Sequence record: OQ363659.1
Length of the DNA stretch: 64,000 bases
Strand: one strand, 5' to 3'
Shown here: in pieces, positions 5,456-15,375 of the stretch
How the letters are laid out: each line of letters starts with the position of its first letter
How positions within the stretch are numbered: position 1 is the first letter of the stretch
Notes under the pieces: model-generated
What the model saw: the letters and a program-made list of their open reading frames with translations, nothing else
Told to the model about the DNA's origin: nothing
The model's database searches: none
Position numbers and translations under genes: made by a program

Positions 5456-5477
5456 GTAATATAGATCTGAGATTTTA
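5456..5477 (-). promoter_or_regulatory. Early promoter AAAATCTCAGATC-TATATTAC
   Basis: Exact core plus an upstream element shared with 55697 and 59162. Confidence 0.8.
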
Positions 5478-5500
5478 TGGAGTCGACAAAAAGGTCACCC

Positions 5501-8948: not shown

Positions 8949-9215
8949 ATGCCTGGTATTGCAAGAGTAGGTGTAGATTCTGCGGGTGGTGTTATTAGTG
9001 GAACACTACAGACAATCGCAACTATCAATGGAGCCCCTATAGCGGTCGTAGGAGACGATGTGAGTGGTCATGATACTGGCGCTCATGCTGGCCCTAAAAT
9101 GGCTCAGGGGAGCTCCATATTCACTATTAACGGCATCCCTGTGTGCCTAGCTGGACATAAGGCTAGTTGTGACCACCAAACGACTGGTGATCCTAAACAC
9201 ATGTGTTCCAGATGA
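8949..9215 (+). CDS. PAAR-repeat spike tip protein
   Basis: IARVGVD, PIAVVGDDVSGH...H, PVCLAGHKASCDH repeats with His/Cys zinc ligands. Confidence 0.9.
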   Translation: MPGIARVGVDSAGGVISGTLQTIATINGAPIAVVGDDVSGHDTGAHAGPKMAQGSSIFTINGIPVCLAGHKASCDHQTTGDPKHMCSR

Positions 9216-9256: not shown

Positions 9257-10426
9257 TTACTCTTCGCCTTTCTTGCGACCAGTAGCAAAGTCAATGGTCT
9301 CTGTCAGGTAATGCAACTCGGTGGAGAGTGCACGAGAGGCCCATTTGTTACCGCTAGTCAGAACAGTACCGAGACGTTGGATAACCATACCGACAACGTT
9401 ACCGATGGTGTTAGTAGCGGTGCTCTCAGATTGAGTCAGCTTACCAGCAATCGATTCCATGTTCGTTACAGCTTTCTCTAGCTTCTGTGACTGAGTCTTG
9501 TCATTGCTATTCCAGTACTCGGCAGTTTCAGTAACCAACGAGTTGATCTGTTTCAATTGATCAGCACCAGGGAATGGCAGACGCTCACCAGTGAACTCTT
9601 TCTTGGTGTTGTATTCGACAACATCAATCTTGAGATACTGTTGGATCTTCTCTACGCCCTGTGGGAACACCGTAGCAGCTGCCGCAGGATCAAACATCAC
9701 CAAACCAAAGTCACCGAGCATTGGAACAGTACGCAGGGTATGTTCTTTATCAGTGGCGTATTCGGGTGCGTAATCTTCGGTAGCGCCTTTAACACCTGGG
9801 AAGTGAATGGAACTACCAATCAGCGCGCCCAGTGCTTTCAGGAATGCTTCTGGTGATTCATCAGTCATGTGTTGAGCAACTAGTTTCTCGGTACCTTCCA
9901 GCACACGAATGAAACCGTTGATGTAATCAGTGATCAGCCAACGTACAAACTTCGATGCGATCTGAGCATGTTCCATTTCATGTCCAACAAACTCACCTGC
10001 GATACACAGTTGGTTTGGATTGAACTTGAAGGTATCTGGGTCAGCTTCGCCTTTCAACAGAGCTGTTTGGTCAGACGACAACGCTTTGATGCGCTTATCG
10101 TTCTTACGACCAACTTCACCAAGACGCTGCATGCCTTGACCAATCTTCTCAATCAACTTACCAATGGTGCGAAGCAGCCATTGGATAATGTTTTTGAGAG
10201 TGATGCCGACTTTCTTGATGCCGGTCACGAGGTCTTTACCAGTTACGCCTTTGCTTTCCGATTGGTCAACTTCAGCGTCCTCCAAGGCGATGCGCATTGC
10301 CATCGCCGTGGGACCAGTAACTACTTCACGACCTTGCATCACTCGCTGAAAGCCTTCCAGCGCCACGTTGTATTGGTGCAGGCGGGCCAGGTCAGCGCCA
10401 ACCTGGGCTAAAGTGATATCGGTCAT
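9257..10426 (-). CDS. Internal head protein, phiKZ gp93/gp162/gp163 paralog family
   Basis: Family N-terminal helix ALE...AMRIALED, A-L-E/S-K-type propeptide, GNQ/GEF core similarity to the neighbouring paralogs. Confidence 0.8.
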   Translation of the reverse strand: MTDITLAQVGADLARLHQYNVALEGFQRVMQGREVVTGPTAMAMRIALEDAEVDQSESKGVTGKDLVTGIKKVGITLKNIIQWLLRTIGKLIEKIGQGMQRLGEVGRKNDKRIKALSSDQTALLKGEADPDTFKFNPNQLCIAGEFVGHEMEHAQIASKFVRWLITDYINGFIRVLEGTEKLVAQHMTDESPEAFLKALGALIGSSIHFPGVKGATEDYAPEYATDKEHTLRTVPMLGDFGLVMFDPAAAATVFPQGVEKIQQYLKIDVVEYNTKKEFTGERLPFPGADQLKQINSLVTETAEYWNSNDKTQSQKLEKAVTNMESIAGKLTQSESTATNTIGNVVGMVIQRLGTVLTSGNKWASRALSTELHYLTETIDFATGRKKGEE

Positions 10427-10435
10427 GATAGTACC

Positions 10436-12193
10436 TTACTGAGTAGAGACTACAGAATCATCTTCGTGGTCTTTGGTTTTGCCATCGGTCTTAGCGGCAG
10501 CGTTGTTTTCACGGATAGCAACTTCGGTAGACGAACCACCTTTGTTAGCTACTTCGTTGTAGAAGCCGATATAGGCTTTGACCAGAGAGGTCAGGTAACC
10601 CATGAAGGCACGATGTTGCATCAGAGCAGCAGTGACTGCGCCTTGACCAACTTTGTTATCGGAACCAACAGTCTTACGCAGTTGCTTCAGAGCGGCCATC
10701 GAAGTGTCTTTACCAATCAGGTTGGCAACGATTCCTTTAACAGCGTTCAGAGAAGCGATAGCGCGTTCTTTCGATGGAATCTTGACGGATTCAACACCGC
10801 CTTCAGCATCACCTACGGAAGCGAAGTCGAACTTCATGAAGGCCTTACCAGCGGAAACGTTTTCCGAGGCGTTGGTGCCATCATTGATGCCGATGAACAT
10901 TGCCTTGTTACCAGGCATTACCGGAGAACGAGTGATGATCGAATAGCTCGACATGCTCGATGGAGCTTCACCCGAGTCAACTTGTTTGAACTGACCGAAG
11001 GTTGCTTCCAGAGCAGCTTGAGCAGCATCTTCGATACGGTCACTACCACCACCAGCGTCTTCTTTCGATACGACTTCAGTCTTACCGGAGCTTGTAGTTA
11101 CGCCGATGAGTTTGATCAGAGCCTGTGGCCATTCGACCAGTAGTTCCTGAGCAGTGCGTTCAACGTTCTTAACGACGTCAACCGAGTCACCGACGAAGTT
11201 ACCGTTGATCATCAGACGACCGCTACCTTTGGAAGTAACTTCCTTACCAGCGTCCAGATCTTTGGCTTGGATAGACTTGATGGTCTTGTCCAGTTCTTCG
11301 ATAAGTTTTGGGGTGTCACGACGGAAGTGGTTCCATGCATCCATGATCATTTCGATCAGACGAGCAATGGCGTTACCAGCGGCAGCGCCCAGTTCTTTCA
11401 GTTTGCCACCGATAGCCGATTCCAGACCTTTAGCTGCAACCAGTTGAGTATCGACTCGACCAATGTCTTCCAGCGAGGCAACAACCGGACGGAAGAACGA
11501 ACGGTCATGGGATTCCAGGGCGATACGAACAGCTTGAGCGAATTCACGGGTTGGCTTCTTACCAGCCTTACGCATACCAACAAGCATGGTCTGGTATTGT
11601 TCCAGTGCAGCTTCGACCTTGTTGATGTTCTCCAGGTCGTTACCAACAGCTTCAGCCTTTTGCAGGGCAGAGTCCGAGCCAACGGTAATACCTTGGTTCT
11701 CGAGATCTTCTACAGCCTGCTCAACGTTCATTACAGAATCGTCGGCTTCTTTTGGTTCGATGTGCTCTGCTTCATTCGCTTCGATAGCGTCTTCTTGAGA
11801 AACAACACCAGTGGTAAGATCTTTCTCACCAGCCGATACAGCGTCAGGAGTCTTGTTAGTAACAGCATCTTCTTCACCTGCGTTACCAGCGTCAGTAGTT
11901 TGCTTAGCCGACACTTTACCAACGTCTTGGGTCTGTGCCTTACCATCCTGAGTGGTGTCTTTCAGTTCTTTGGTCGGGGTATTCGAAACGGAAGCATCTA
12001 CTTCTTCGTTTGGTTTAACCGACTCGGTGATTTCGATCTTGACGTCCTTCTGTACAGGAGCGTCAACGGAAACTTTTTTGTCTTCTACGACGGCTACAGA
12101 TTCCATCGAGGCGAGAAAGCCCATTGCATCTTGAAAACGTTTTTTGACAGCAGGCTTCTTAGCTGCTGGTTTTTTGGTTACTGGCTTAGCCAT
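10436..12193 (-). CDS. Internal head protein paralog with long acidic propeptide
   Basis: Many S/A/G-X-E sites (ASME, SQE, ANE, ALE, SLE, GLE); conserved ALEQY...IALES block. Confidence 0.8.
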   Translation of the reverse strand: MAKPVTKKPAAKKPAVKKRFQDAMGFLASMESVAVVEDKKVSVDAPVQKDVKIEITESVKPNEEVDASVSNTPTKELKDTTQDGKAQTQDVGKVSAKQTTDAGNAGEEDAVTNKTPDAVSAGEKDLTTGVVSQEDAIEANEAEHIEPKEADDSVMNVEQAVEDLENQGITVGSDSALQKAEAVGNDLENINKVEAALEQYQTMLVGMRKAGKKPTREFAQAVRIALESHDRSFFRPVVASLEDIGRVDTQLVAAKGLESAIGGKLKELGAAAGNAIARLIEMIMDAWNHFRRDTPKLIEELDKTIKSIQAKDLDAGKEVTSKGSGRLMINGNFVGDSVDVVKNVERTAQELLVEWPQALIKLIGVTTSSGKTEVVSKEDAGGGSDRIEDAAQAALEATFGQFKQVDSGEAPSSMSSYSIITRSPVMPGNKAMFIGINDGTNASENVSAGKAFMKFDFASVGDAEGGVESVKIPSKERAIASLNAVKGIVANLIGKDTSMAALKQLRKTVGSDNKVGQGAVTAALMQHRAFMGYLTSLVKAYIGFYNEVANKGGSSTEVAIRENNAAAKTDGKTKDHEDDSVVSTQ

Positions 12194-12225: not shown

Positions 12226-12248
12226 GGTTGGTACCTGAGGCACCAACC
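12226..12248 (-). terminator. Hairpin followed by TATG, probable terminator plus late promoter
   Basis: GGTTGGTGCC-TCA-GGTACCAACC stem then TTATG upstream of gene 12193. Confidence 0.5.
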
Positions 12249-12253
12249 AAACG

Positions 12254-12535
12254 TTAAAGGGTTTTGAGCATTTGTGGTGTGACGATCTTTGCTGGAATGG
12301 TTTTACGCTTTTCTTGCCAAGCCGCTTTAATGACTCGGTGATAACCATCCAACGTAACCCATTCACCTGTAGGAAGCTGTGTGACAATAATCGGAACACT
12401 GATGTCAGCAGCACGCATGCGTTTGACATCGTAGTCATCATCGATCATCCACGTAACACGCTTGAGATCGAAATCAACAACGGGAGTGTTACGTGTCAGG
12501 TCCAGTAAGGCATCCACACTGTAGGTTTTACCCAT
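12254..12535 (-). CDS. ParB/Srx N-terminal-like domain, probably expressed as a -1 frameshift extension of 12586-13992
   Basis: PIIV...TLDGYHRVIKA motif; no SD near ATG 12535; frame open and protein-like upstream to the slippery site. Confidence 0.7.
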   Translation of the reverse strand: MGKTYSVDALLDLTRNTPVVDFDLKRVTWMIDDDYDVKRMRAADISVPIIVTQLPTGEWVTLDGYHRVIKAAWQEKRKTIPAKIVTPQMLKTL

Positions 12536-12585
12536 GTGCGTAAATGTGCTATCGGGTCCCTCACTGTAAGCTTCGTTAGATGTGG

Positions 12586-13992
12586 TTACTTTCCCTCGGC
12601 ACGGATGTGGGCAGCGATCATGGCATCGGCAATCGCACGACGTGCTTTACATGCACGCATACCGTGTTCTACCAGACCAGCCCAATCGGAGTTCAATACA
12701 GATCGCAGATAGGTAGTCACGATCTGACGTACTTCAGGAACGACCTCAGTTTTCTCCAGATCCACTTGCAGCTGTTCAACTGCATGTTCGATTTTGCCTT
12801 TGACTTCTTCGAGTTCTTCGATGTTCTCGTAGGTCAGCATTGCACGATCCAATACCTTCCAGCAATCATCACGGGAGATGACTTTGAAGTCAGTCGAATC
12901 GGGCTTATCATAGTCACCATCGACCAGTTTGAAACCGCCGCCTTCTACTTCCAGAACCTTGTTAGACGCACCTACCGCAGTAGACAACTTCTTAACAGGA
13001 TCTTTCTCAACAGCTTCTTTGATACGGCCACCAGCTTTGGTATCGGATGCCAGAGCAGACGAGATAGCTTTGATTCGGGTGAGGGTAATAGCTACCCAGT
13101 TCTGAGAGATCGAGCGCAGTTGGCTGTCTTCCCACCGACCAACGCCCTGCCAATCGTTCTCAACCGAGTTGATGTAAGCAGCTTCTGGTACAGAGATCTC
13201 CTTTGGAAGTGGCTCCAGCTTAACCGGTTCAGGCTTACGCTCTTCCTTCTCTACCTTAGGTGCTGGCTTCTCATGGCCGATAGCTTTGATAGCAGCAGCG
13301 GTCTTAGTGCCTTCCGCACCTTCTTGGTCCAGCTTAACCGAACTTGGATTGGACGATTTAGCTACCCCCAACAGGAATTGAGTTTTAGCTTTCTCTTTGG
13401 TGAAGAGCTTCTTGATCTTACCGAAGAACGACTTCAGTTCATTCCAGCGCTTCTTGATCCATTCCCAGAACTTAGCCCAAACTTCTTTAGTCTTACCTTT
13501 CAGCTTAGCCAGTTTGCCAGTGGCTTCTTTCTCAGCTTCTTTGGTATGGCCGATACGCAGTGGACCAGCATCGTCATCGATAGCTTCCAACGAGGTAGTC
13601 AGCTTAGAGAAGAACTTCGGATACATGCTTTTCAGGTCATGTGCGATAACCGATGCAGTCGCAGCTTCCAACCCGTACCGAGTCGAGCCACGCAGAATTT
13701 CCAGGTAAGCTTCAGTCGATGCACAAGCTTCATCCAGACGCTCCATTTGTTTATGGATAGCCTCGCCTTGACGTTTGGAGGCTTCATCAATAGCAGTGAA
13801 GTCTTTACCATCCACTTCTACTTCGTAAGCAGCTTCCGCTACATCGCCTTTACCAGAACCATCATCGGCTACATCTTGCACTTCATTTTTACCCAGCGAA
13901 GAACTGGTTTCTTTTACTTCGACAGGACGGGCAACGCCGTCCTCCGATTCCAGGCTAGCGATCAGCTTGGTGAGTTTAACTTTCTTAGCCAT
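12586..13992 (-). CDS. Internal head protein paralog
   Basis: LIASLESE, YGLE, TSLE protease-type sites; WAKFWEWIKK helix typical of the family. Confidence 0.8.
   Translation of the reverse strand: MAKKVKLTKLIASLESEDGVARPVEVKETSSSLGKNEVQDVADDGSGKGDVAEAAYEVEVDGKDFTAIDEASKRQGEAIHKQMERLDEACASTEAYLEILRGSTRYGLEAATASVIAHDLKSMYPKFFSKLTTSLEAIDDDAGPLRIGHTKEAEKEATGKLAKLKGKTKEVWAKFWEWIKKRWNELKSFFGKIKKLFTKEKAKTQFLLGVAKSSNPSSVKLDQEGAEGTKTAAAIKAIGHEKPAPKVEKEERKPEPVKLEPLPKEISVPEAAYINSVENDWQGVGRWEDSQLRSISQNWVAITLTRIKAISSALASDTKAGGRIKEAVEKDPVKKLSTAVGASNKVLEVEGGGFKLVDGDYDKPDSTDFKVISRDDCWKVLDRAMLTYENIEELEEVKGKIEHAVEQLQVDLEKTEVVPEVRQIVTTYLRSVLNSDWAGLVEHGMRACKARRAIADAMIAAHIRAEGK
12589..12595 (-). other. -1 ribosomal frameshift slippery heptamer G_GGA_AAG
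   Basis: GCC GAG GGA AAG TAA at the end of the internal head gene; identical to the lambda G/GT slippery site; -1 frame open for 111 codons. Confidence 0.7.
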
Positions 13993-14001
13993 GATGATTC
14001 C

Positions 14002-15375
14002 TTACTCGGCTTTGCCAGCGGTGGCAGCGACGTTCTCGTAGAAACCTACGAGTGCTTTAGTGGTGGTGTTGAGGTAGCCCAGATAGCTAACGGAGAAGCC
14101 CAGAGCACACAGTACGTACGAAGACATGAACTTACCGAACGGAGTACCTTCCATAGCGATTTCACTGAGGAAACCACGGAGGTCATTCGCTACAGCGTCA
14201 CGACGGTTACCGATATCCAGCAGGGACTTGGTACGAGTGATACCTTGTGCCAGTTCTTGTGCACTAGGAACTTTCACTTCTTTGGTAGGTTCACTACCTT
14301 CGACGCGTTCCAGTTTAACGGTAAGTGCTGAGCTCAGCTGTGTACTGACGATCTTAGGATCTTTCAGTTTGTCGTTGTGGTAGGTCAGGATAACCTCACG
14401 GCCACCTGGAAGTTCGGTAGTCTTAACGATCGACTTGCCTTCTGGATCACGTTGTACGCCAACAGTCAGAGCTTCAGGCAAGCACTTACCGAAGGTACCA
14501 GCCAGGTCTTTGAACAGACCGTTAACGATACCCAGCCATTCGTCTTCGTCTTCCAGGTTAGTATCTTTGACCTTAGCCTTGGTGCTGCGAACGAGGTCGA
14601 GGATAGCCTGTGGCCATTTGATCATCATACCTTCAGAAGCAGCCAACAGGGCCTGAACGGATTCGCCGTTAGAACCTACGATGTCACCGTTAGCAGTCAG
14701 CGATTTCAAACCACCGTAGTTAATGGCAGCGCCTTCTTTGATGCCACCAGCTTTGATGATCTTCTCAGCAGCTTCCAGACGCTTGGTGAGTTCATCACGG
14801 TTAGTGGACATGAAGTTCCAGGCGTTCATGATACCTTCGATCAGTTTCTTGATCGCTTCAACGATACCTTTACCTACAGCTTTAGCACCGGACTTCAGTT
14901 TGTCCAGGAGTTCCAGCGATACAGTCATACGACCGACTGGTGCATCAAATGATTCCAGAGCCGGAACGGTTTGAGCGAAGAACTGAGCATCATGACGACG
15001 CAGACTGATTTGAATAGCCTTAGCCAACGAGCTAGGGACGGATTCGTTACGGTCTACGTATTTGGTAACTTGACCGATGTGGTGTTCGAGGGCAGCTTTA
15101 CAAGCTTCCATCTTGGTGATGTCTTCACCGACCTGTACGCCTTCATTGATAGCGTTTTGGATAGCTGGGGTAACACCATCTGAGTCACCAGCTTTAACGG
15201 TATCAGCAGCAGTAGCAGCTTCGCCTTTCGAATCGGCTTCAGCAGTCGGTGCTTCTGGGTGATCTTTGGTGGCCGAAGCCGACGCATTGGTTACATCTAC
15301 TTGGCGAGCGACGCCATCGCTATCTTCCAGGCTTGCAAGAATGGAAGTGAGCTTATGGGTTGAGTGCTGTGGCAT
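14002..15375 (-). CDS. Internal head protein paralog
   Basis: ILASLEDS N-terminus nearly identical to the neighbour, ALEHH...ISL block, VSLE site. Confidence 0.8.
   Translation of the reverse strand: MPQHSTHKLTSILASLEDSDGVARQVDVTNASASATKDHPEAPTAEADSKGEAATAADTVKAGDSDGVTPAIQNAINEGVQVGEDITKMEACKAALEHHIGQVTKYVDRNESVPSSLAKAIQISLRRHDAQFFAQTVPALESFDAPVGRMTVSLELLDKLKSGAKAVGKGIVEAIKKLIEGIMNAWNFMSTNRDELTKRLEAAEKIIKAGGIKEGAAINYGGLKSLTANGDIVGSNGESVQALLAASEGMMIKWPQAILDLVRSTKAKVKDTNLEDEDEWLGIVNGLFKDLAGTFGKCLPEALTVGVQRDPEGKSIVKTTELPGGREVILTYHNDKLKDPKIVSTQLSSALTVKLERVEGSEPTKEVKVPSAQELAQGITRTKSLLDIGNRRDAVANDLRGFLSEIAMEGTPFGKFMSSYVLCALGFSVSYLGYLNTTTKALVGFYENVAATAGKAE

Follow-up and report, generated by a model that had tools for sequence, protein, structure and literature searches.

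Pseudomonas phage D6 (OQ363659.1) is a phiKZ-like jumbo phage of 307 kb whose host is P. syringae pv. tomato DC3000. We analysed a 64,000-nucleotide stretch of this record (the window; a window coordinate is the record coordinate minus 124000), and in particular a small gene that GenBank lists at 12254-12535, between two internal head protein (IHP) genes, as a 93-aa 'hypothetical protein'. We favor the possibility that this entry covers most of a ParB/sulfiredoxin (ParB/Srx) domain that has no start codon of its own, is fused to the upstream IHP by -1 frameshifting, is packaged as cargo and is then freed at an S-N-E motif. Taken as a whole, this reading of the sequence appears to us moderately probable.

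Four paralogous IHP genes form an array at 9257-10426, 10436-12193, 12586-13992 and 14002-15375. Each matches Pfam PF12699 (phiKZ_IP), and all of them lie, as does the domain, on the minus strand. The carrier, flanked by its three paralogues, is the 468-aa open reading frame (ORF) at 12586-13992 (0 frame, TAA stop at 12586-12588); it matches PF12699 at 2e-9, above the gathering score, as well as PHROG IHP families 8282 (phrog_8282) and 6807 (phrog_6807). A slippery heptamer, G GGA AAG (12589-12595), abuts the 0-frame stop. In the -1 frame there follow a linker, V-T-T-S-N-E (12572-12589), in which S-N-E occupies 12572-12580 and the predicted cut falls after E6 (12572-12574), and the predicted mature cargo, a 105-aa, 12.0-kDa ParB/Srx-fold domain (A-Y-S-E-G ... 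K-T-L; 12257-12571) with its stop codon at 12254-12256. The domain includes P-I-I-V (12383-12394) and the core motif of its family, D81-G-Y-H84-R85 (12335-12349), and the ATG at which GenBank starts the 93-aa ORF (12533-12535) encodes its internal Met19. An earlier prediction made from the letters of this DNA (the original prediction) had read a T-S-N-E linker and PIIV...TLDGYHRVIKA within 12254-12589. Both are exact in the minus-strand translation, which runs V-T-T-S-N-E-A-Y-S-E-G-P-D-S-T-F-T-H-M-G-K and later contains P-I-I-V and T-L-D-G-Y-H-R-V-I-K-A.

The junction between carrier and domain

The domain lies in the -1 frame relative to the carrier ORF. The 3' end of the carrier gene reads gcc gag gga aag TAA, and the -1 reading of the overlap is ggg aaa gta acc aca tct aac gaa. 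For comparison, relatives were drawn from the annotated phages RVTF4 and Psa21, from contigs encoding homologous proteins and from scans of the IMG/VR and JGI metagenomes (loci are numbered L003, L004 and so on where they must be told apart). A script run over all collected loci yielded 14 distinct fusion-type junctions. In every one of them the domain is in the -1 frame relative to an upstream IHP-type ORF whose last codon, for Lys, is immediately followed by TAA or TAG, and the -1 frame opens only 0-20 codons before the slip point (0-5 in several). None of the 14 has a canonical start codon (ATG, GTG or TTG) ahead of the conserved domain N-terminus; in D6, likewise, the domain frame upstream of the annotated ATG contains none of the three.

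What the junctions do share is a slip site. Half of them carry a heptamer of the form G_GGA_AAG (D6, L022 and L023), C_CCA_AAG (RVTF4 and L021), A_AAA_AAG (L016) or A_AAA_AAA (L008), and most of the others carry A_AAG. These heptamers recur in carrier C-termini that are otherwise unalignable. G_GGA_AAG, C_CCA_AAG and A_AAA_AAG are highly shift-prone heptamers in E. coli (PMC5009743), and Z_ZZN is the minimal -1 shift site, A_AAG being the studied example (Atkins et al., PMC5009743). As a control, only 3 of the 136 window ORFs of at least 100 codons end in A-AAR plus stop, and 2 of the 136 end in XXXYYYZ plus stop. On this comparative evidence the D6 domain is very likely made by -1 frameshifting as an extension of the IHP, with a predicted product of 579 aa and 64 kDa. 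Sequencing error as the source of the junction is ruled out because 14 independent assemblies carry differing heptamers, and transcriptional slippage is an unlikely origin, the A-run in D6 being too short.

With regard to elements that might stimulate the shift, hairpins start 1-5 nt after the carrier stop in Psa21, L016, L008 and L006 and are lineage-specific. The adjacent stop codon is present in all lineages and is the sole universal candidate stimulator. Because unstimulated heptamers typically shift at low efficiency, we infer that the fusion is made in low copy number. The individual hairpins lie at 5476-5492 in Psa21 (L003; UGCCUCC-CAG-GGAGGCA), at about 4004-4021 in L016 (with a GAAA loop) and at about 4988-5015 in L008. 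A different hairpin (ggttggt ... accaacc; 12226-12248, minus strand) lies directly 3' of the domain ORF in D6 and is kept in RVTF4 and Psa21. It precedes the GGAG Shine-Dalgarno sequence of the next IHP gene, has no T-run and was missed by a simple terminator scan; it may be a phiKZ-type terminator or processing signal.

An alternative that dispenses with frameshifting is that ribosomes terminate at the carrier stop and reinitiate, or start at a non-canonical codon just after it, so that the domain is made as a separate protein. The overlap of stop and domain frame (AAG TAA / AAA GTA A) does resemble that of coupled genes, and in one locus of the free-standing type (L004) the domain gene is tightly coupled to the gene upstream. 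However, the frame offers no ATG, GTG or TTG, and none of the codons that follow the stop (GTA ACC ACA...) is known to initiate translation. Reinitiation would also leave unexplained both the recurrence of G_GGA_AAG, C_CCA_AAG and A_AAA_AAG in different sequences and the presence of a protease-type site at the very N-terminus. We consider this scenario very improbable.

The region between the carrier stop and the annotated ATG bears directly on where the domain begins. Over these 18 codons the alignment has 9, 7 and 17 variable columns at -1-frame codon positions 1, 2 and 3, a pattern that matches that of the annotated ORF portion (24, 13 and 34 by the same measure), and in codons 8-18 pairwise differences amount to 429 synonymous versus 121 non-synonymous. 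Judged by these substitutions, the codons upstream of the annotated ATG are evidently under purifying selection and evolve as coding sequence. Furthermore, three close free-standing relatives (58% identity, other genome context) have their own ATG and Shine-Dalgarno sequence and start M-[SA]-G-S-K-x-V-Y-T-E-G; their N-termini therefore reveal the true start of the domain.

Could the GenBank record nevertheless be correct, with a free-standing 93-aa protein made from the ATG at 12535 and unlinked to any head protein? The annotation itself, the presence of Met at this position in most close relatives and the many small free-standing members of the family would fit. Against this, (i) no Shine-Dalgarno sequence precedes the annotated ATG, unlike the three neighbouring IHP genes, which have GGAG or AAGGA 6-9 nt before theirs (AAGGA at 7 nt in the carrier); (ii) several relatives have Q, E or D in place of Met19 and then lack any start; (iii) the 18 upstream codons are conserved as protein, including Y8, E10 and an S-T-F-T-H strand shared with free-standing homologues and (iv) residues 15-24 of the structural model described below belong to a beta-hairpin of the fold. 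We regard the annotated version as hardly tenable, and the current D6, Psa21 and RVTF4 annotations, which begin at the internal Met, are most likely wrong. The original prediction had already proposed a frameshift fusion to an internal head protein; the 14 junctions with their slip sites, the lack of start codons and the upstream coding constraint all bear this out.

Family and fold of the domain

The Psa21 and RVTF4 homologues are labelled ParB/Sulfiredoxin in UniRef. An exhaustive profile search placed the domain in a family of at least 806 clusters (50% identity representatives) at E <= 1e-3, 368 of them at E <= 1e-10, whose members are mostly free-standing proteins of 105-125 aa. In an alignment of 90 members, W47, D81, H84 and R85 are invariant and Y8, E10, G20, Y23, R57, P66 and G82 nearly so; the D6 domain retains all conserved polar residues of the family. 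When the 90-member profile was compared with PDB sequences it found SbnI (E 1.3e-5), sulfiredoxin (E 0.42) and Helicobacter ParB (E 0.6), all of the ParB/Srx fold. A profile of the close relatives alone reached SbnI at E 0.5, and the 90-member profile was needed for E 1e-5. In these comparisons D-G-Y-H-R aligns with I-D-G-V-H-R of SbnI and G-C-H-R of sulfiredoxin.

An AlphaFold2 model built from the 90-member alignment is of good predicted quality (predicted local distance difference test (pLDDT) 87.8, predicted template modelling score 0.79), and pLDDT drops below 50 only at residues 1-6, V-T-T-S-N-E. Residues 15-24 form part of a beta-hairpin of the fold. The best ~50 Foldseek matches in the PDB are all ParB/Srx proteins (sulfiredoxin, Noc, SbnI, CDP-bound ParB, PadC, KorB, free serine kinase, 1vk1 and Atu1540), and VIA re-alignment gave the same ParB/Srx set at Z 6-7.5. 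The matches to the free serine kinase SerK and to 1vk1 extend over the N-terminal hairpin (model residues 4/9-111). It is thus almost certain, as far as a modelled structure can tell, that the D6 domain has a ParB/Srx fold with an intact D-G-x-H-R core, as had been proposed from the sequence; the structure prediction gave that fold.

With its relatives SbnI and SerK (free-serine kinases), sulfiredoxin and the CTPases ParB, Noc and KorB the domain shares the fold and a G-x-H-R type motif after the central strand. It differs from these enzymes in being a single 105-aa domain that lacks a helix-turn-helix (HTH), the C-terminal kinase lobe, the arginine patch of ParB box II and the catalytic Cys of sulfiredoxin. 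The role of the active-site arginine in the ParB/Srx motif has been described (PMC5512222). Because every conserved polar residue of the family is kept, it is most likely that the domain binds a nucleotide or phospho-substrate or turns one over, by analogy with other ParB/Srx proteins.

Two more specific assignments were considered and rejected. The first was a canonical ParB: the D6 domain has no Pfam match at E <= 1, 105 aa leave no room for an HTH, and weak ParB_N matches were seen in only 4 of the 90 relatives. The second was the DdrB-like ParB family, for which hhalign against residues 1-400 of P1 DdrB returned a probability of 0.4% (with a single-sequence template, so that a distant kinship is possible). 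Separately, 7 of the 90 family members gave weak matches to PF23719 ('VapB-like antitoxin'). Bacterial PF23719 proteins of ~106 aa, mostly from Actinomycetota, resemble one viral cluster in language-model features and predicted structure (TM 0.56-0.61); when clusters were ranked by features next to the D6 domain, this one, at most a putative relative, came first. The PF23719 family may itself be ParB/Srx-like. A metagenomic protein of 1401 aa (P0035) contains 11 tandem matched stretches of the domain, and its Pfam matches look spurious.

Linker, carrier and prohead protease

One S-x-E in the 111 residues of the -1 frame, where 0.2 would be expected from composition, is unremarkable alone. Its conservation is another matter. 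After the shift, all 14 fusion-type relatives read K-V-x-x-S-x-E-x-Y-x-E-G, with S and E invariant despite synonymous codons (TCT, TCG or TCC for S; GAA or GAG for E), and the positions around them vary, with T, P, A, V or S at P4, with N, V, Q, L, T, K or M at P2 and with A, V, E, M, T or D at P1'. In the three close free-standing relatives the site reads S-K-[TA], without the E, and S-x-E-x-Y occurs in 0 of 83 free-standing family members. In the AlphaFold2 model S-N-E falls in the sole disordered stretch.

A candidate protease for such a site is encoded nearby. The D6 homologue of the phiKZ prohead protease gp175 is 57% identical over its full length (E 7e-99) and lies at record positions 122973-123806, outside the window and ~200 nt before its start, close to the IHP array that it presumably processes; Psa21 and RVTF4 also encode a gp175 homologue. 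Experimental cleavage sites of this protease family are SLE-13 of phiKZ gp93, SQE-122 of phiKZ gp86 and SQE-113 of 201phi2-1 gp148 (PMC5694885), and the same SLE and SQE tripeptide types are found in the fusion linkers. A cut after E6 is predicted to leave a product of 105 aa that starts one residue before the conserved Y, at the point where many free-standing homologues begin (for example M-x-Y-x-E-G). This agrees with the ~105-aa product of the original prediction.

We consider it reasonably likely, from these sequence features, that the domain is released by cleavage at S-N-E. The claim that this is a prohead-protease site stands in so far as the site is conserved in all 14 fusions, lies in a disordered linker, is of a published type and comes with a gp175 homologue; it does not stand on the E, which taken alone is common throughout the family. 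Only the combination of that E with an S at P3 is specific to the fusion type. For the same reason A-L-E in RP12 (N-A-L-E/G-Y, the slash marking the putative cut) and I-S-E in PA5oct (T-I-S-E/S-Y), which we had considered as independent protease sites, were downgraded. We also rejected S-x-E as a by-product of RNA hairpins, in which UCN...GAR codons cap the stem (Psa21 and L016): D6-like sequences carry the motif without a hairpin.

The carrier itself has candidate sites of the same kind. A motif scan found S-L-E15 close to its N-terminus (I-A-S-L-E/S; 13948-13956), which matches SLE-13 of phiKZ gp93 in position and type (PMC5694885), and S-L-E136 further in (T-T-S-L-E/A-I-D; 13585-13593), the candidate end of an N-terminal propeptide. 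The paralogue at 14002-15375 has L-A-S-L-E/D near its N-terminus, as the carrier has S-L-E15, and at the equivalent of S-L-E136 paralogues read P-A-L-E-S-F-D and A-S-L-E-D-I-G. The Psa21 carrier, gp218, is much shorter, at 180 aa. Over its first 140 residues it shares 56% identity with residues 4-139 of the D6 carrier, and similarity stops at the equivalent of S-x-E136 (P-S-V-E-A-F-D), so that the Psa21 carrier would be essentially a propeptide plus a short tail, the slip site and the cargo. All carriers, including one of 341 aa in L008, match the same N-terminal part of phrog_8282. This is as would be expected if prohead delivery depends on the N-terminal region of the IHP. A targeting role of propeptides is established for T4 and has been proposed for giant phages (PMC10052503). 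At the Psa21 locus (L003, 5490-6588), gp217 (187 aa) and gp218 are both N-terminal remnants of D6 IHPs (of 457 and 468 aa, respectively, at window positions 12586-15375), with 67% and 56% identity over the first ~140-175 residues; the C-terminal bodies are lost and the slip site and cargo are retained.

The fusion might also be made and packaged and never be released. The domain would then remain at the C-terminal end of an inner-body protein and work within the capsid, for example in assembly or upon the packaged DNA. Here the architecture is well supported whereas cleavage is inferred, the E of S-x-E may in part be a feature of the domain, and ParB/Srx domains can bind DNA or nucleotides. 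Permanent attachment gives no account, however, of an invariant P3 S amid variable P4, P2 and P1' residues in fusion-type sequences only, placed in a disordered linker. In phiKZ and 201phi2-1, cleavage at identical motif types has been shown by experiment, and the Psa21 carrier consists of little beyond a propeptide that would itself be removed. We therefore see retention of the intact fusion as rather unlikely.

Other phages and the proposed delivery route

A tblastn search of 50,697 phage records located the domain in 43 of them, all from jumbo phages; in the same search phiKZ, phiPA3 and 201phi2-1 gave no match. In several of these phages it is joined to proteins that are, or resemble, virion components. 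It makes up the C-terminal half of PA5oct gp343, which is annotated 'structural protein, ESI-MS/MS', and it is the C-terminal domain of a 664-aa protein in the Ralstonia phages RP12 and RP31 and in FLC phages that is annotated as an RNA polymerase (RNAP) beta/beta-prime subunit. The gene for this protein adjoins that of another RNAP subunit. In RP12 and RP31 the domain is joined in frame to the virion-RNAP-like subunit, with N-A-L-E/G-Y at the same position. Metagenomic fusions include portal plus InPase, Mu F head protein, and ART-PolyVal, GNAT, LigD_N and GH19 modules. These metagenomic fusions follow the 'polyvalent protein' theme, in which delivery of ParB/Srx domains together with the DNA has been predicted (Iyer et al. 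2017, PMC5512222).

These observations suggest the following working model. A minority of the ribosomes translating the 468-aa IHP would slip by -1 at G GGA AAG just before the TAA, enter the domain frame and complete the 579-aa, 64-kDa fusion. The N-terminal IHP or propeptide part would carry the fusion into the prohead beside unextended IHP, where the phiKZ-type prohead protease would cut the flexible linker after S-N-E. This would free a 12-kDa domain with an N-terminus that is essentially that of free-standing homologues, and each capsid would hold a few copies that could be ejected together with the DNA. From the sequence comparisons, we think it likely that the fusion is packaged in the virion; ejection followed by nucleotide-dependent activity in the newly infected cell is possible, if somewhat doubtful.

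More tentatively still, the D6/Psa21/RVTF4 clade may possess a modular cargo cassette, made up of propeptide, slip site at the stop, S-x-E linker and cargo, that meters a few nucleotide-acting enzymes per capsid for injection ahead of phage gene expression. Such an enzyme could act before the phage nucleus exists, for example against nucleotide-based host immunity or against host or rival DNA, and the portal, Mu F and virion-RNAP fusions could serve the same purpose. We regard this broader proposal as speculative and rather doubtful.

Several observations weigh against the overall reading: (i) neither the D6 domain nor any of 17 close relatives gave a significant match in Pfam, NCBIfam or PADLOC scans, so that there is no direct model match; (ii) some junctions are non-canonical, with G GGG AAG in L006 and only the minimal A_AAG in Psa21, L010, L012, L013, L014 and L020; (iii) no convincing stimulatory RNA structure was found downstream of the D6 slip site (single fold, z = -0.55), nor did RNAalifold on the 14 junctions give a conserved consensus structure, and given the absent stimulator structure the efficiency of frameshifting in D6 could be very low; (iv) in the wider family, free-standing proteins included, the second residue ahead of the conserved Y is commonly E, and the S-x-E signal may thus be partly intrinsic to the domain; (v) our literature search yielded neither proteomic nor ribosome-profiling nor biochemical data on D6, Psa21 or RVTF4 (virion mass spectrometry is absent from the papers on D6 and Psa21, and no paper mentioning RVTF4 was found) and (vi) in EL, Xoo-sp14, Erwinia Huxley and Serratia PCH45 the domain is a free-standing gene in a non-structural neighbourhood.

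The last of these points deserves closer attention. The homologue in Xoo-sp14 (L030, 2498-2848) lies between the genes for dTMP kinase and thymidylate synthase and that in Huxley (L031, 2486-2818) in a tRNA region, and these two and the free-standing homologue of EL (L026, 3998-4357) sit among nucleotide-metabolism, tRNA or replication genes. Such neighbourhoods hint at a nucleotide-related activity that would also be used inside the cell. The original prediction had portrayed the domain as a delivered effector. There is precedent for this in so far as the domain is fused to virion proteins elsewhere; because many free-standing homologues lie among non-structural or nucleotide-metabolism genes, it is not intrinsically an injected effector. 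By its distribution the domain is better described as a portable, enzyme-like module that was attached independently to packaged proteins in several lineages and is not a virion protein by nature.

It could then be argued that the frameshift merely throttles a cytoplasmic enzyme, for example one of nucleotide metabolism, the linkage to a head protein being incidental and the product unpackaged. The neighbourhoods in Xoo-sp14 and Huxley and a GNAT gene beside the homologue in L004 would be in keeping with this, as would the fact that the closest solved relatives, SbnI and SerK, are small-molecule kinases. Yet the upstream ORF is of the IHP type in 14 of 14 lineages, and its N-terminal propeptide region is kept even where the remainder is lost. 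A cytoplasmic role would give the conserved protease-type site nothing to do, and the independent portal, Mu F and virion-RNAP fusions, together with the PA5oct homologue annotated as detected by mass spectrometry, point to virions. We judge this alternative improbable and retain packaging and release of the fusion as our working model.

There is precedent for each element of this model. In T4, internal proteins and Alt carry a capsid-targeting sequence that is cut by gp21, and IPI* is ejected as an anti-restriction factor. The proposed D6 route resembles this in its logic of a targeting peptide that directs cargo to the core of the prohead, a prohead protease that cuts after x-E and an exit of the cargo with the DNA. 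It differs in that the T4 tag is ~10 residues long, N-terminal and in frame, whereas the D6 'tag' would be a whole IHP or propeptide, located upstream and joined by recoding. The inner-body proteins of phiKZ and 201phi2-1, processed by the S80 prohead protease gp175, form another parallel: they belong to the same PF12699 family, have S-x-E sites and are served by a protease to which that of D6 is 57% identical. Once processed they are regarded as candidates for ejection (PMC5694885). These substrates, however, lose N-terminal propeptides, while in D6 we predict a C-proximal cut that frees a foreign C-terminal domain reached by -1 frameshifting.

Frameshift-generated C-terminal extensions of structural proteins are known from T7 gene 10A/10B and lambda G/GT, and G_GGA_AAG is the shift site of the tail-chaperone (g-t) genes of the archaeal virus HCTV-5 (PMC5009743). 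As in T7 and lambda, a -1 slip on X XXY YYZ near the end of a structural gene would produce a minor extended form at a fixed ratio. Unlike those cases, the D6 extension is enzyme-like, resides on an IHP and has a putative protease site, and the slip site abuts the stop in all lineages. Polyvalent proteins and DdrB-like ParB proteins (PMC5512222) provide a further parallel, having a ParB/Srx domain that is solo or fused and often near virion genes, as in the D6 family; a polyvalent protein is one long polypeptide, whereas the D6 product would be two modules joined by a frameshift, and the family profile gave no hhalign match to the P1 DdrB N-terminus. Singly, then, frameshift extension of structural proteins, protease-released capsid cargo and ParB/Srx domains in delivered polyvalent proteins are already known. 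The clade-conserved combination of an IHP or propeptide carrier, a stop-abutting slip site, a release site and a ParB/Srx cargo appears to be new and did not turn up in the searchable literature, which likewise yielded no description of recoding in the internal head protein genes of jumbo phages.

Apart from the virion RNA polymerase, little is known about what jumbo phages inject and about how such proteins are selected and dosed. The locus offers a testable four-part rule, in which a propeptide acts as carrier, recoding sets the ratio, a protease site serves for release and a widespread ParB/Srx domain is the cargo. In addition, it amends the annotation of a gene family whose database entries begin at an internal Met and links a family of at least 806 clusters (50% identity) to virion delivery in several unrelated phage groups. 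If the broader cassette proposal is true, the cassette would also offer a natural template for placing proteins of choice in the heads of jumbo phages.

Elsewhere in the window, no tRNA genes were found. An 88-aa ORF at 8949-9215 on the plus strand, between a baseplate assembly gene and the IHP array, has a PAAR motif (PF05488, E 1.5e-9) and no CDS in the D6 GenBank record; its Psa21 counterpart is listed in RefSeq as a 'putative tail-associated lysozyme', and the metagenomic loci L006 and L008 carry PAAR as well.

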